DNA from: Monocercomonoides exilis PA203 | Lineage: Eukaryota > Protista > Preaxostyla | Direction: 5' to 3' | Length of the DNA stretch: 64,000 nucleotides | NCBI GenBank assembly: GCA_001643675.2 | Contig: LSRY02000038.1 | Location: forward strand, 434,001 to 498,000 | Shown here: piece by piece, positions 19,942-47,100 of the stretch | Layout of the letters: each line of letters starts with the position of its first letter | How positions within the stretch are numbered: position 1 is the stretch's first letter | Position numbers and translations under genes: made by a program | The notes under the pieces: model-generated | Seen by the model: the letters and a program-made list of their open reading frames with translations, nothing else | Database searches by the model: none | Told to the model about the DNA's origin: nothing

Positions 19942-21347
19942 GGTAGAGGGTAACAACACACCACAATCCAAAACCTATATATTTTAGCAGATAATTACTT
20001 CTTATTCATTTACAAAAAAGAATTATAATATGAAACCTCCGGGTTTGTGAGAAATTAAATTTTTAATTTTTGGGAAAATATCCACTTTTTATAGGATGGA
20101 TCATATTTGATCGCATTGATGTCTCACATTCCGGATCGCAAATCAAATATTTTTCAAAAAACGAAACTGTTCCAAGATAATGAAGCTACGTGGAATTGGT
20201 TAATGAGATTTATGCCATTCGCAGTGAACAAAAGATGCCCTAAGTGCAGGAAAAATTTCTCCATAGAAGCTCGAGATAATTGCAGTAATTACAGGTGCTA
20301 CAGATGTGGAAAATACTGCTCACTGTTAGGATTGACTCCTTTGAAAAAATCAAAAATACCTATAGAGAAAATAATGATGATATTTCTGTGTTTCTGGATC
20401 AACATAGAAATATATCAGTTCAGCTTGCTCACTGATGTTTCAAGACAAACTGTAGGTGGGTTTTATTCAATTGGAAGAGCATGCATGGCTGATTACGGTT
20501 CAACATCTTTCGAAAAGCTTGGTGGCCCGGGAATAATTATTGAAATGGATGAAGCAATTCTTCGAAAAAGAAAGTTTCGAAAAGGAAGAAGAAAGAAACA
20601 GATATGGTTATTCGGAATGATAGAAAGAAAGCATGATGGAAAGAAAGGGAAATGTTTGATTGTGAGAGTGAAAAACAGAAAAAAAGAGACATTAATACCA
20701 ATAATCAAAAGAAACACGATTCCAGGATCAACTATTTACTCGGATGAGTGGAAAGCCTACAGCTCATTATCATCCTTAGGTTATGATCATCACACTGTTT
20801 GTCACAAATACAATTTTGTGGATCCAGAAAGTGGCATTTGCACAAATTTGATTGAAAGCACTTGGTCAAGCTTTCGAAAATCTCTTCCTAGAAATGGAAT
20901 TAAAGAAAAATACATTGATGACTTTGTGACTAGCTTTGTTGGAAAAAGATCAGAAACACTTGAATTTGAAGATTTCATTCAAAATATTGAATGTTTAAAA
21001 ACCCTTGAATCATTAAAAAGAAATAGATGAAACTGAAGAAGATGAAACCGAAGAATCTGATGAAAGTGATGTGCCAGTTTTAAATGAAAATGATGAAGAA
21101 ACTGAAGATGAATCTGATTCTTTAGGAGCGGGCGATGGAGCAGATGCATCCGAGTATGAATTGTGACTTATTTATTTTTTCATTCACATTTTGACCCAAA
21201 ACAAATATTGTTCTGTGAAATATTTTTGTTTTGTTTTCTTCAAAACCTGGAGTTGGTAGTTACCAAAAATGCTATAAAATAAAGAATATAAACATGTGGA
21301 ACACAATTAAAATGAATTTGGGTTGTGGTGTATTGTTACCTTCTGCC
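19942..21347 (+). mobile_element. Merlin (IS1016/IS1595-like) DNA transposon, full length
   Basis: 31-bp imperfect TIRs GGTAGAGGGTAACAACACACCACAATCCAAA / GGCAGAAGGTAACAATACACCACAACCCAAA (27/31 match). Perfect 8-bp TSD AAAATGGC at 19934-19941 and 21348-21355. Confidence 0.93.
20107..21030 (+). CDS. Merlin/IS1595-family DDE transposase with an N-terminal Zn ribbon
   Basis: CPKC..CYRC zinc ribbon, GGPGIIIEMDEA, RKFRKGR, WLFGMIER, PGSTIYSDEWKAY, HHTVCHKYNFVDP..TNLIESTW. Confidence 0.92.
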   Translation: MIALMSHIPDRKSNIFQKTKLFQDNEATWNWLMRFMPFAVNKRCPKCRKNFSIEARDNCSNYRCYRCGKYCSLLGLTPLKKSKIPIEKIMMIFLCFWINIEIYQFSLLTDVSRQTVGGFYSIGRACMADYGSTSFEKLGGPGIIIEMDEAILRKRKFRKGRRKKQIWLFGMIERKHDGKKGKCLIVRVKNRKKETLIPIIKRNTIPGSTIYSDEWKAYSSLSSLGYDHHTVCHKYNFVDPESGICTNLIESTWSSFRKSLPRNGIKEKYIDDFVTSFVGKRSETLEFEDFIQNIECLKTLESLKRNR

Positions 21348-43943: not shown

Positions 43944-46900
43944 TCAGTGAAGCTCATTTATTCTTTTTTCCATTTCTCTTTTCTGAAATGGAAGAATAAA
44001 ACTCGGACTTGTTAAACCATTAAAATGGAACTTCAAATTCATCTGTCTGTATCCTCCTGGATTCCTTGGGTTTTCTGTATTATCAGAAACATATGGATTT
44101 GAAACCAATATTTCTGGATTGATTGGGAACAATCCAGTCGACCTGAATGCGTTCTCCTTGTGCAGCAGTGATGTTGCCGTATTTTCTGAATCAATTGCAC
44201 ACTCAACGATTAATTTTCTTCTGTCAGCGGTTTTCATTTTTTGTCTGTCATTGTGCTCATCCACCCATTTAATTTTTCTACTCCTAATCAGCTTTCTGAA
44301 TGCGTTTCGAAGAGGACAAGCAATTCCAACATCAAAAGGTTGCATTATGTGAGTCAAATTACCAGGCAGAGTGAAAACGAAAATATGATGCTGTTCAAAC
44401 ATAATCAACACTGAAGGGCAAAGGCGAGATGGATGACTATCAAGAATGAAAAAAACAGGAGAATTGAGTGGAATAACTCCAAGCGACCTGCAAATTGTGT
44501 CCATGAGCAGAAATGAACAGCATAACAATGGAAAGCATTTCTGTCCATTCATCCAGATGCATTTACGTGGATTATTCAAGAACATGGTTTTCTTGTAATC
44601 CAATAATTCAGAAGGAACTGTTTTCAAGGCAAAAAAATGATAAATGGCGGAGGAGCTATGCAAGATGGTCCAATGGTGGTCATTATTGATATATGATTAT
44701 TTGAGTTATCTTCTGTGAAAGCATGTGCTCTTTTGGCTTCGGTTGGCACGATTAATTTATGGGAAGAGCAAAAATCATCATTCCATTCGTCTGCGAAAGA
44801 TATATTAAATTTGTTTTCAGATGGCTTGAAATCTTTGTTGAACATTAAATTGAACCACGCTCTGATGTTTGACGCGAATGCTGAGTTCAATTTGACTGGG
44901 GTTCTTTCAGAATAAGAGAAAACTTCATAATTGAACTTTAAAATGAATCCGGACACATATGCTTGAGAATGTGGATCAAGTTGTTAATCAAAATGCTTGA
45001 TAACAGGACTAAGTCCAAAGTGAAGAGACATCTTGAATGATTTCAGATTTTGCCTTTGTATTTCCGAATAAGTAATTTCTCTTAATTCTTGAGTTGTTAT
45101 TCCATCATGTTGTTGATATTTTTCATGAACAATATTCAGCACCTTTTCCTCACCCTCGAAGTTAAGTAAACATGGCTTTGTGTGAATTTCCTTGGCATAG
45201 GTTCAAACGCGTTCCTTTTGCAATTTGCGTTTTTAAACACTCAAATTATAACGAATTAATAGATAATAATTATTCAAAAACTTTTTATGGACCGATTTTT
45301 CGAAAAAAATTTTTCTTGTTGAAAAAAATGACTTTTGAAAAATGACCCATAAAAACATGAATTTCAATAAAATTTATTCAAATTTAAAAGAAAACGTGAT
45401 TTTCACACATCCAATGTGCTTTTATAATAATATAAATTTATTTTATTAATTAATTTTCATCAAAAAAAATATAAATCATAAATAAAAAATTTAATTAAAT
45501 ATCTTTGATCTAACCCACAATAAAATTTTTAATATCTGGAAAATTTGAATATGCTGTTTAAGTTAAAATAGAACCTAAAAGTATGTTGTTCGTTCACTTT
45601 TATATGTTAATATAAGTATATTATTATATGCTAACTTGTATAATGTTGAAAACAGATTTAATTATCAGTGACACAAACACATGCATTTTCACTTCCATGT
45701 TGTTAAGCTGAAAGATTAAAATTTCAAAATTGGTTGCAATGGAACGCAAAAGGTATTATATGATTCATAATATCAAATAAATATTCATTTTCTTTTTTCC
45801 TTTCAAATATTTTCTTTTCCTTTGATATGTTAATGTATTTTTTTATTAGACTCGATCATAGCATGCTTAAATAAATCAATGTTGCAAAATTAAACATTAC
45901 TTACACAAAATGGCTCAATATTGAGAAATAAAAACATATACTAAATAAAAGTTTGGTTTTTTTTACCATAAAGAAAAGAATTGTTTGAATTTGATTTATT
46001 TTACTCTAACAGTGAATTAGATGTTGTAATATGCGGAAGTGAAGAAGAACCATGCCAAATGATGTGTAAATGGATGGAAAATATGAAAATGGGAAATGAA
46101 ATGAGAATAATTCAGATTGATAAACCAAATCAATCTAATTTTTCATTTTTTTTTTAAAGACATAAAAATGACAAACTTTTATTTAGTATATGTTTTTATT
46201 TCTCAATATTGAGCCATTTTGTGTAAGTAATGTTTAATTTTGCAACATTGATTTATTTAAGCATGCTATGATCGAGTCTAATAAAAAAATACATTAACAT
46301 ATCAAAGGAAAAGAAAATATTTGAAAGGAAAAAAGAAAATGAATATTTATTTGATATTATGAATCATATAATACCTTTTGCGTTCCATTGCAACCAATTT
46401 TGAAATTTTAATCTTTCAGCTTAACAACATGGAAGTGAAAATGCATGTGTTTGTGTCACTGATAATTAAATCTGTTTTCAACATTATACAAGTTAGCATA
46501 TAATAATATACTTATATTAACATATAAAAGTGAACGAACAACATACTTTTAGGTTCTATTTTAACTTAAACAGCATATTCAAATTTTCCAGATATTAAAA
46601 ATTTTATTGTGGGTTAGATCAAAGATATTTAATTAAATTTTTTATTTATGATTTATATTTTTTTTGATGAAAATTAATTAATAAAATAAATTTATATTAT
46701 TATAAAAGCACATTGGATGTGTGAAAATCACGTTTTCTTTTAAATTTGAATAAATTTTATTGAAATTCATGTTTTTATGGGTCATTTTTCAAAAGTCATT
46801 TTTTTCAACAAGAAAAATTTTTTTCGAAAAATCGGTCCATAAAAAGTTTTTGAATAATTATTATCTATTAATTCGTTATAATTTGAGTGTTTAAAAACGC

Positions 46901-47100
46901 AAATTGCAAAAGGAACGCGTTTGAACCTATGCCATTTCCTTTTCGTTCCAAGTTTGTCCGGCACAATAATATCCAACATCGCTAGGAAAATTTTGGATCG
47001 TAATGTGAACGCTTCTGACGAAAAACAAATCTTCAATAGAAAAGCATCAAAAGCAACAATAACTTTGTCGTTTTATGAATTAGCGTTTTGAACTTCAAAT
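43944..47100 (-). pseudogene. pogo/Fot1-like (DDE_1, DD35D) transposase, frameshifted and interrupted by the long-TIR element
   Basis: SFADE, ISIMTTIGPS..PPPFIIF and FILDSHPSR..TLPGNLTHIMQPFDVG (35 residues between the Ds). An HTH-like segment KPCLLNFEGEEKVL lies near 45180, and the reading frame appears to continue beyond 46941. The 5' limit is approximate. Confidence 0.82.
45194..46933. mobile_element. 1,740-bp non-coding element with 762-bp inverted arms and an 8-bp TSD
   Basis: Arms 45194-45955 and 46172-46933 are reverse complements (no mismatch in spot checks), separated by a 216-bp spacer. Termini GGCATAGG..CCTATGCC. TSD ATTTCCTT at 45186-45193 and 46934-46941. Confidence 0.93.

Follow-up and report, generated by a model that had tools for sequence, protein, structure and literature searches.

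The palindrome at positions 45194–46933 of the 64,000-nucleotide stretch of Monocercomonoides exilis PA203 DNA analyzed here (contig 34, 434001–498000; hereafter the window) raises the questions of whether it is a genuine insertion or a product of assembly, to which group of mobile elements it belongs, and how its two arms come to be identical. The element has a length of 1740 bp. From either end inward it is identical to its reverse complement over exactly 762 bases, which leaves a spacer of 216 bp, and comparison of the sequence with its reverse complement shows the arm and spacer lengths given in the preliminary description to be exact. A repeat search returns arms of 771 nt with 200 nt between them, because the next 8 bases add only 3 mismatches. 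The ends of the element read GGCATAGG...CCTATGCC, both starting GGCATAGGTTCAAACGCG.. (GGCA..TGCC), and an exact 8-bp duplication, ATTTCCTT, occupies 45186–45193 and 46934–46941; the GG..CC termini and the 8-bp target-site duplication (TSD) noted earlier can thus be read directly, with ATTTCCTT on both sides. Polishing of a palindrome during assembly could have made the arm identity of 100% a slight overestimate. Tandem arrays detected in the arms by TRF are four in number and weak, with ~2 to 2.6 copies and lengths below 40 bp. The window element has no transposase gene and no long open reading frame (ORF), so that the earlier statement that it contains no ORF holds for long frames and needs amending only for a 32-codon stump in the centre, at 46059–46157. 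The centre consists, in order, of Y-type native sequence adjoining the left arm, the start of a cargo gene, a founding junction, and X-type sequence of the right arm, the types X and Y being two haplotypes described below; the cargo stump loses its homology at the founding junction and then reaches a stop. The features of the locus are as follows.

43944–45193, minus strand: host sequence downstream of the interruption, part of a decayed gene for a pogo-like transposase (DDE_1, PF03184, E 5e-08)
45186–45193, no strand: left TSD copy, ATTTCCTT, the target being single in at least 11 paralogous empty sites
45194–45955, plus strand: left arm (the "long" one) of 762 bp, joined without a break to the native 5' region of the family
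45194–45353: outer ~160 bp of the left arm, the part best kept across the family according to the between-element conservation profile
45956–46171, plus strand: non-palindromic centre, 216 bp, from alignment of all foldback centres with X- and Y-type full units
46059–46157, plus strand: 32-codon stump (MMCKWMENM...) of a cargo ORF of ~1100 aa
46117–46122, plus strand: founding fold-back junction, from ..CAGATTGA to the inverted arm, from the centre alignments
46172–46933, minus strand: right arm, 762 bp, exact reverse complement of the left arm
46934–46941, no strand: right TSD copy, ATTTCCTT
46942–47100, minus strand: upstream part of the interrupted pogo-like frame, homologous to paralogous host copies

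The interrupted host gene is decayed by stops and frameshifts, and its Pfam match to DDE_1 (PF03184, pogo/Tigger type) spans 43947–44663 with an E value of 5e-08. Removal of the element together with one TSD copy rejoins the minus-strand frame (..AGQTWNEKEIHTKPCLLNFEGEE..). Empty sites were sought by comparing 500 bp of each flank, each with its copy of ATTTCCTT, with the whole genome, and in at least 11 paralogues of the host element the two flank matches share exactly 8 bp, which means that the target is there once and uninterrupted. The window element is a genuine insertion into a dead pogo-like gene accompanied by an 8-bp duplication, and the DDE_1 match and the empty paralogous sites bear out the earlier proposal that it had split a pogo-like transposase whose frame is restored by its removal. 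The alternative is a false palindrome, generated by a chimeric long read or by an error in polishing. It deserves consideration because long-read libraries are known to give perfect palindromes as artefacts, but it leaves unexplained the exact 8-bp TSD and the rejoinable host frame, six further copies of this build, located elsewhere and mostly flanked by TSDs of their own, and two other foldbacks with clearly unlike arms, which no artefact would give. The single target in at least 11 uninterrupted paralogues together with the six similarly built copies elsewhere identifies an insertion and in effect excludes an assembly fold-back, which is regarded here as extremely improbable. For annotation, the case cautions against dismissing long perfect palindromes of this genome as errors of assembly, since they are real mobile DNA.

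The 82.3-Mb assembly, comprising 101 contigs, was searched for relatives of the element. With up to 3 mismatches allowed, the genome contains 56 occurrences of the terminal 22-mer and 0 of the reversed control, and copy types were sorted by BLAST using one arm and the centre as query. Seven copies of 1737–2000 bp are foldbacks, namely the window copy and those on contigs 10, 1, 11, 80, 13, and 22. About 16 copies of 2.9–5.4 kb carry as cargo an ORF of ~1100 aa starting MM.KWMENME.., and in these one end matches query bases 1 to ~927 and the other only 1 to ~450–567. Giant palindromic copies of 10.8, 16, and 20 kb have arms of 4.4–6.6 kb at 99.8% identity. Among the 25 copies whose ends were read, 15 are flanked by perfect and 3 by near-perfect 8-bp TSDs, and 7 have no recognizable TSD; the duplicated octamers are AT-rich and have no consensus. 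The element is thus a member of a family of at least 25 copies that share the same termini and mostly have 8-bp TSDs. Residues 186–1022 of the cargo ORF are 60–82% identical to stretches of many host open frames of 2,700–3,000 aa, whereas residues 1–185 match only transposon copies in the genome search, and a Pfam search with the ~1100-aa ORF found no family. On the basis solely of the identity across residues 186–1022, the cargo ORF appears to be partly derived from a giant host gene family.

The Merlin superfamily consists of the eukaryotic relatives of bacterial IS1595/IS1016 and is characterized by TSDs of 8 (or 9) bp. All described Merlins start with GG, and in Monocercomonoides sp. PA203 they form seven families with terminal inverted repeats (TIRs) of 23–29 bp, 8-bp TSDs, and GG termini (PMC8101967). 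The ordinary Merlins found in the present assembly are 1.4–1.9 kb long, start GGCA or GGTA, and are flanked by 8-bp TSDs; one of them lies in the window at 19942–21347, in line with the earlier remark that the TIR of a local Merlin begins GGCA. The window element itself has an 8-bp TSD and 5'-GG TIRs, and relatives with the same ends encode a DDE transposase of IS1595 type. The main one among these relatives is a copy of 10.77 kb on contig 13 that has the family termini, its own TSD (CGAATATT), and 4.4-kb arms at 99.84% identity, and whose 1.9-kb centre contains a 487-aa open frame with a match to DDE_Tnp_IS1595 (PF12762, E 1.7e-21). When this frame is aligned with eight ordinary Merlin transposases of the genome, the DE, SD.W, and IE..W motifs of the DDE triad are kept, and its N-terminal CxxC..CxxC finger also aligns with theirs. 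A search of the contig 13 copy for separate Merlin TIRs flanking its central transposase gene found none, indicating that this gene is not an ordinary Merlin nested in a larger element. A second copy, on contig 16, is collinear with that on contig 13 across a 6.3-kb unit of arm, cargo, and transposase, at an identity of 89%, and a third transposase, 82% identical, lies between two inverted cargo ORFs at 1.37 Mb of contig 16, in a giant copy that, like the host receptor genes, was placed by coordinates only. The same position of the transposase in three copies, and its divergence in parallel with the arms, indicate that it is the family's own, although in principle the Merlin gene of the giant copies could be an old passenger.

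The ORFs of the copies that were compared with Pfam contain no hAT or MULE transposase domain, and DDE_Tnp_IS1595 is the sole transposase domain among them; the other Pfam results in the submitted family ORFs are one D5-like helicase and one kinase fragment. Autonomous copies encoding a MULE or hAT transposase, which the preliminary description had named as the finding that would speak against a Merlin link, are absent from the copies examined, and its cautious assignment of a long-TIR, non-autonomous element as possibly an unusual Merlin derivative is strengthened by the fact that the same termini and arms bound the 10.77-kb copy with its intact-looking IS1595/Merlin DDE transposase. The genome search that it had proposed, for the termini, their TSD lengths, and any copies carrying a transposase, has thus returned 56 termini, mostly 8-bp TSDs, and a transposase of IS1595 type.

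MULEs are characterized by TSDs of 9–11 bp, and hAT elements by 8-bp TSDs, short TIRs, and a transposase with BED and dimerization domains. Membership in hAT fits the 8-bp TSD but was rejected because the submitted ORFs contain no hAT transposase, and membership among the MULEs because the TSDs are consistently 8 bp rather than 9–11 bp and the submitted ORFs gave no MULE domain. MITEs are usually shorter than ~800 bp, have a high copy number, and lack coding capacity; the window element is likewise non-coding, but at 1740 bp and with only seven foldback copies it is not placed among them. An apparent autonomous copy on contig 38 is in fact a short Merlin of the ordinary kind (TIR GGCATTAGTCGATTAG..), lodged within an arm fragment. 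That the family might nevertheless belong to another superfamily with 8-bp TSDs (hAT, or an atypical MULE or P element), the Merlin genes of the giant copies being passengers, is suggested by the 8-bp TSDs that hAT elements also make and by the long TIRs typical of some MULEs and of Galileo in the P superfamily. This assignment is nonetheless highly improbable, since the termini start with GG as in all described Merlins (PMC8101967) and resemble the GGCA.. TIRs of the local ones, since DDE_Tnp_IS1595 is the only transposase domain in the ORFs submitted to Pfam, and since the contig 13 transposase gene, which has no TIRs of its own, has diverged along with the arms across three copies.

The window element retains the family termini and ~0.9 kb of the family 5' end, joined to an inverted copy of that stretch. 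The 5' region exists among full units as two haplotypes, X and Y. All seven foldbacks share one junction, at which the cargo sequence ..CAGATTGA passes into the reverse complement of an X-type arm at about base 835, with a microhomology of ~5 bp (TTGAA in the less altered copies) that is present in both partners. A single junction with 5-bp microhomology in all seven copies shows that they go back to a single founding event. The founder thus consisted of an X-type 5' end of ~925 bp followed by its own initial ~835 bp repeated in inverted orientation, with a loop of ~90 nt. It probably arose when repair or replication switched templates or copied a folded-back strand, a single microhomology junction being the expected signature of such events.

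The identity of the arms extends beyond the foldbacks to the family as a whole. Comparison of the outer 440 bp gives a median identity of 99.8% between the two ends of a single element, with 12 of 25 elements at 100%, as against a median of 86.8% between different elements, and the nearest relative of an arm is its own partner in 44 of 50 cases. Over their length, the arms within one element are usually identical, whereas different elements differ by 5–20%. Conservation between elements is 93–98% for bases 1–160 (85% in the bin 41–60) and 76–86% further in. The superior conservation of the outer ~160 bp makes this the likely functional end and probably the end that the transposase binds.

Global alignments of the foldback arms reveal how these similarities are distributed. 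The foldbacks on contigs 11, 13, 22, and 80 are X/X, with arms identical to ~800–817 bp, and the contig 80 copy has a MITE-like insertion of 259 bp in one arm only. The nearest relatives of the window copy are those on contig 10 and contig 1, at 99.5% and 98.6% in the outer 440 bp, and in both of these the long arm is of type Y and the other arm of type X from base 556 inward, a difference of 18%. Their unlike arms are most simply explained by a Y-type relative having overwritten one arm. Both arms of the window element, by comparison, are of X type at 28 of 29 diagnostic sites in 562–650 and of Y type at 24 of 27 in 657–753, the switch from X to Y falling between bases 650 and 657. The window arms are therefore two-block mosaics of two haplotypes that the nearest relatives keep on separate arms. 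The spacer is 216 bp rather than ~90 bp because a mismatch of Y type on one side with X type on the other remains. The presence of the identical X and Y mosaic in both arms requires transfer between the arms in both directions. Judging from the haplotype pattern, the mosaic may have arisen in any of three ways: through two tracts of conversion, through patchy repair of mismatches in a snapped-back heteroduplex, or through one conversion combined with a crossover. A single crossover between the arms, which flips the centre, was rejected as the source, since it gives the X and Y blocks of the long arm but not those of the other, and conversion is still needed.

An element that had simply folded back recently, or had jumped from a master copy with perfect arms, would have identical arms through youth and with no homogenization. 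The TSD of the window copy is perfect, and the 99.5% identity of its nearest relative in the outer 440 bp indicates that the insertion is recent, in agreement with this explanation. However, the foldbacks share a founding junction and yet differ by up to ~14%, while 5 of the 7 keep perfect or near-perfect arms; the TIRs of the longer copies behave in the same way; and the arms of the nearest relatives are 18% apart in their inner third, so that a window mosaic of both requires exchange between arms. Youth as the only cause of arm identity is for these reasons unlikely. The preliminary description had left the choice between a very young and an arm-homogenized element; the family-wide arm identity and the mosaic give better support to homogenization, and the insertion also looks recent.

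Alternatively, arm identity could be reset by transposition itself, for example through a single-strand or hairpin intermediate in which one arm is re-synthesized from the other. Such a process would suit the strikingly common arm identity in the family and the recurrence of its palindromes at 1.7, 10.8, 16, and 20 kb. It is very unlikely all the same, given that the copies on contigs 10 and 1 carry the same unlike arms at two loci, that the contig 80 copy retains its 259-bp insertion in one arm only, and that the chemistry of DDE cut-and-paste transposition offers no reason for it. The contig 10 and contig 1 copies lie at different loci, both flanked by a TSD or near-TSD, and nonetheless have the same unlike arms, indicating that the element moved without its arms being reset. 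Near-identical pairs on contigs 1 and 91, considered for evidence of conversion in place, have unrelated flanks.

Taken together, the element is best explained as a non-autonomous foldback derivative of a family of Merlin elements (IS1595-like DDE) whose arms are homogenized in place, a reading to which a probability of roughly 0.85 is assigned. Its copies would be moved in trans by the Merlin transposase of the family acting on the conserved outer ~160 bp, and their arms would be homogenized where they lie, either by gene conversion between arms or through repair of mismatches after the strand has snapped back into a hairpin or cruciform, and probably not by transposition itself. Merlin is among the least studied cut-and-paste superfamilies, and the literature consulted gives its ends lengths of tens to a few hundred bases; a literature search yielded no account of Merlins with kilobase arms or in foldback form. 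The family described here shows Merlin running with arms of 0.76 to several kilobases, and shows that such elements can carry host-derived genes and can also shed all but their arms to become foldbacks. Its copies record the founding of a palindrome at one microhomology junction, its erosion by an outside haplotype on one arm, and its restoration by copying from arm to arm, a record that bears on the formation and maintenance of palindromes in general.

The preliminary description had suggested that the palindrome could extrude a cruciform or give a 760-bp dsRNA hairpin feeding RNA silencing. The central 1 kb, folded as RNA, is predicted to form one uninterrupted stem with an energy of -641 kcal/mol and a z-score of -73, and the genome contains at least four genes with Piwi domains and one frame of 1200 aa with two RNase III domains. 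The predicted stem and the presence of Argonaute- and Dicer-like genes make a route from hairpin to small RNAs possible, as a minority possibility. More specifically, the foldback may be a natural "killer" locus that silences its own family through hairpin RNA, a suggestion that is put forward tentatively and is doubtful at present. Read-through from the pogo remnant, or a family promoter borne on the arms, would yield a perfect hairpin RNA of ~760 bp that would match all members of the family across their ends and 5' region, and from which Dicer-like and Argonaute proteins would make small RNAs silencing the giant gene-carrying Merlins. If this were the case, homogenization of the arms would keep the silencing trigger perfect. 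In maize, the Mu family is silenced by hairpin RNA from Mu killer, a partial inverted duplication of MuDR. The window element is similar in that it duplicates, in inverted orientation, the 5' end of an autonomous element and could give a long hairpin RNA matching every member of the family, a likeness that serves as a lead only.

Elements with very long inverted arms are known from other systems. The arms of Drosophila Foldback (FB) are built of tandem sub-repeats and its TSDs are 9 bp long, and Tc4 of Caenorhabditis elegans duplicates a TNA target and groups with pogo-like elements. The foldbacks of the present family resemble FB and Tc4 in having very long inverted arms, a short loop, and mostly non-coding copies that depend on rarer coding versions, but the window element differs from both in its 8-bp TSD and in the Merlin transposase of its relatives. 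Gene conversion between the arms of large palindromes is also known, from the human Y chromosome and from the inverted repeats of plastids. As in those cases, the arms of one palindrome are near-identical while independent copies diverge; here, however, the process takes place inside a mobile element, on a scale of 0.4–6.6 kb, and in many copies at once.

The present family has in common with the Merlin superfamily its 5'-GG TIRs, its 8-bp TSDs without a clear target consensus, and the DDE_Tnp_IS1595 transposase with an N-terminal CxxC..CxxC finger encoded by its transposase-bearing relatives. Merlin TIRs measure 23–29 bp in the Monocercomonoides families, and the maximum quoted for the superfamily is 462 bp (PMC8101967). 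Unlike published Merlins, the family has arms of 762 bp in the foldback and of 4.4–6.6 kb in the giant copies, and a large cargo ORF that comes partly from a host gene family. In its behavior it is closest to Galileo of Drosophila, a member of the P superfamily, in which "2T" copies consist of two long TIRs and a short spacer, and in which the TIRs vary in length and grow by recruiting internal sequence in inverted orientation, with chimeric copies and exchange between copies (PMC3573991). In both cases a canonical cut-and-paste family has given rise to non-autonomous derivatives resembling foldbacks. The two differ in that Galileo has 7-bp TSDs, a P-type transposase, and tandem repeats in its TIRs, whereas the window arms contain no substantial ones according to TRF. 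Membership of the window element in a Foldback or Galileo type was rejected because its TSD is 8 bp, not 9 or 7, and its arms are not built of tandem repeats. A foldback Merlin parallels the lesson that Galileo provided for the P superfamily.

The family considered here, Merlin (IS1595-like DDE) transposons that share termini with the 1740-bp foldback of the window, includes giant palindromic copies and pairs of copies in opposite orientation, listed here with the ordinary Merlin element of the window.

Family copies and an ordinary Merlin element
contig 16, 997450-1017897: 20-kb palindrome, arms of at least 6.6 kb
contig 59, 411965-427696: 16-kb palindromic family copy, arms of 6.4 kb, 99.86% identity
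contig 32, 1051969-1060448: 8.5-kb family copy, TSD GATAATAA
contig 1, 817245-822642 and 847013-852408: pair of family copies, near-identical, opposite orientation
contig 91, 1434072-1438329 and 1485393-1489650: pair of family copies, near-identical, opposite orientation
window, 19942-21347: ordinary Merlin, 1406 bp, TIRs GGTAGAGGGTAAC.. and GGCAGAAGGTAAC.., 8-bp TSD AAAATGGC

Each arm of the contig 16 palindrome carries a family arm, cargo ORF and Merlin transposase gene in a row, and the 6.1-kb centre contains a second Merlin transposase, only 49% identical, together with a protein-kinase-like fragment. The contig 59 copy has no TSD. What is left of the family's Merlin gene in its arms is decayed, and the protein encoded in its centre (2.9 kb) is not a transposase but a D5-like primase-helicase of 485 aa (DUF5906/VapE, E 4e-17). 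A 1.7-kb stretch inside the contig 32 copy is duplicated in inverted orientation (99.7% identity). The copy also has long acidic repeat ORFs, along with a Merlin DDE ORF of 301 aa that may or may not be the family's own transposase.

The 12-base flanks of the contig 49 family copy (550012-554300) are mutual reverse complements rather than direct repeats, and the copy therefore seems to lie at the centre of a larger palindrome. Members of the contig 1 and contig 91 pairs measure 4.3-5.4 kb each and are spaced 30-50 kb apart; in both pairs only one member is flanked by a TSD, which is perfect.

The foldback on contig 80 (locus bases 461-2460) bears, in one arm only, a 259-bp MITE-like insertion at element base 521, with ends ..GTGTGATTATTTTTGA / TCAAAAATAATCACCC. 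Because sequence sharing its GGGTGATTATTTTTGA end also interrupts the contig 49 unit, the insertion may belong to a GGG..CCC MITE family. On contig 38 (locus bases 1065-2449), a terminal piece of one family arm holds, about 135 bp in, a nested ordinary Merlin that is short and decayed (TIR GGCATTAGTCGATTAGATCGACACCC).

The local Merlin invoked in the preliminary description is the 1406-bp element of the window, which contains a 311-aa open transposase frame.

With regard to the idea that foldback hairpin RNA could feed silencing of the family, RNA-interference machinery appears to be present: genome-wide (contigs 28, 47, 8 and 22) there are at least four Piwi-domain genes, together with a single open frame of 1200 aa that contains two RNase III domains.
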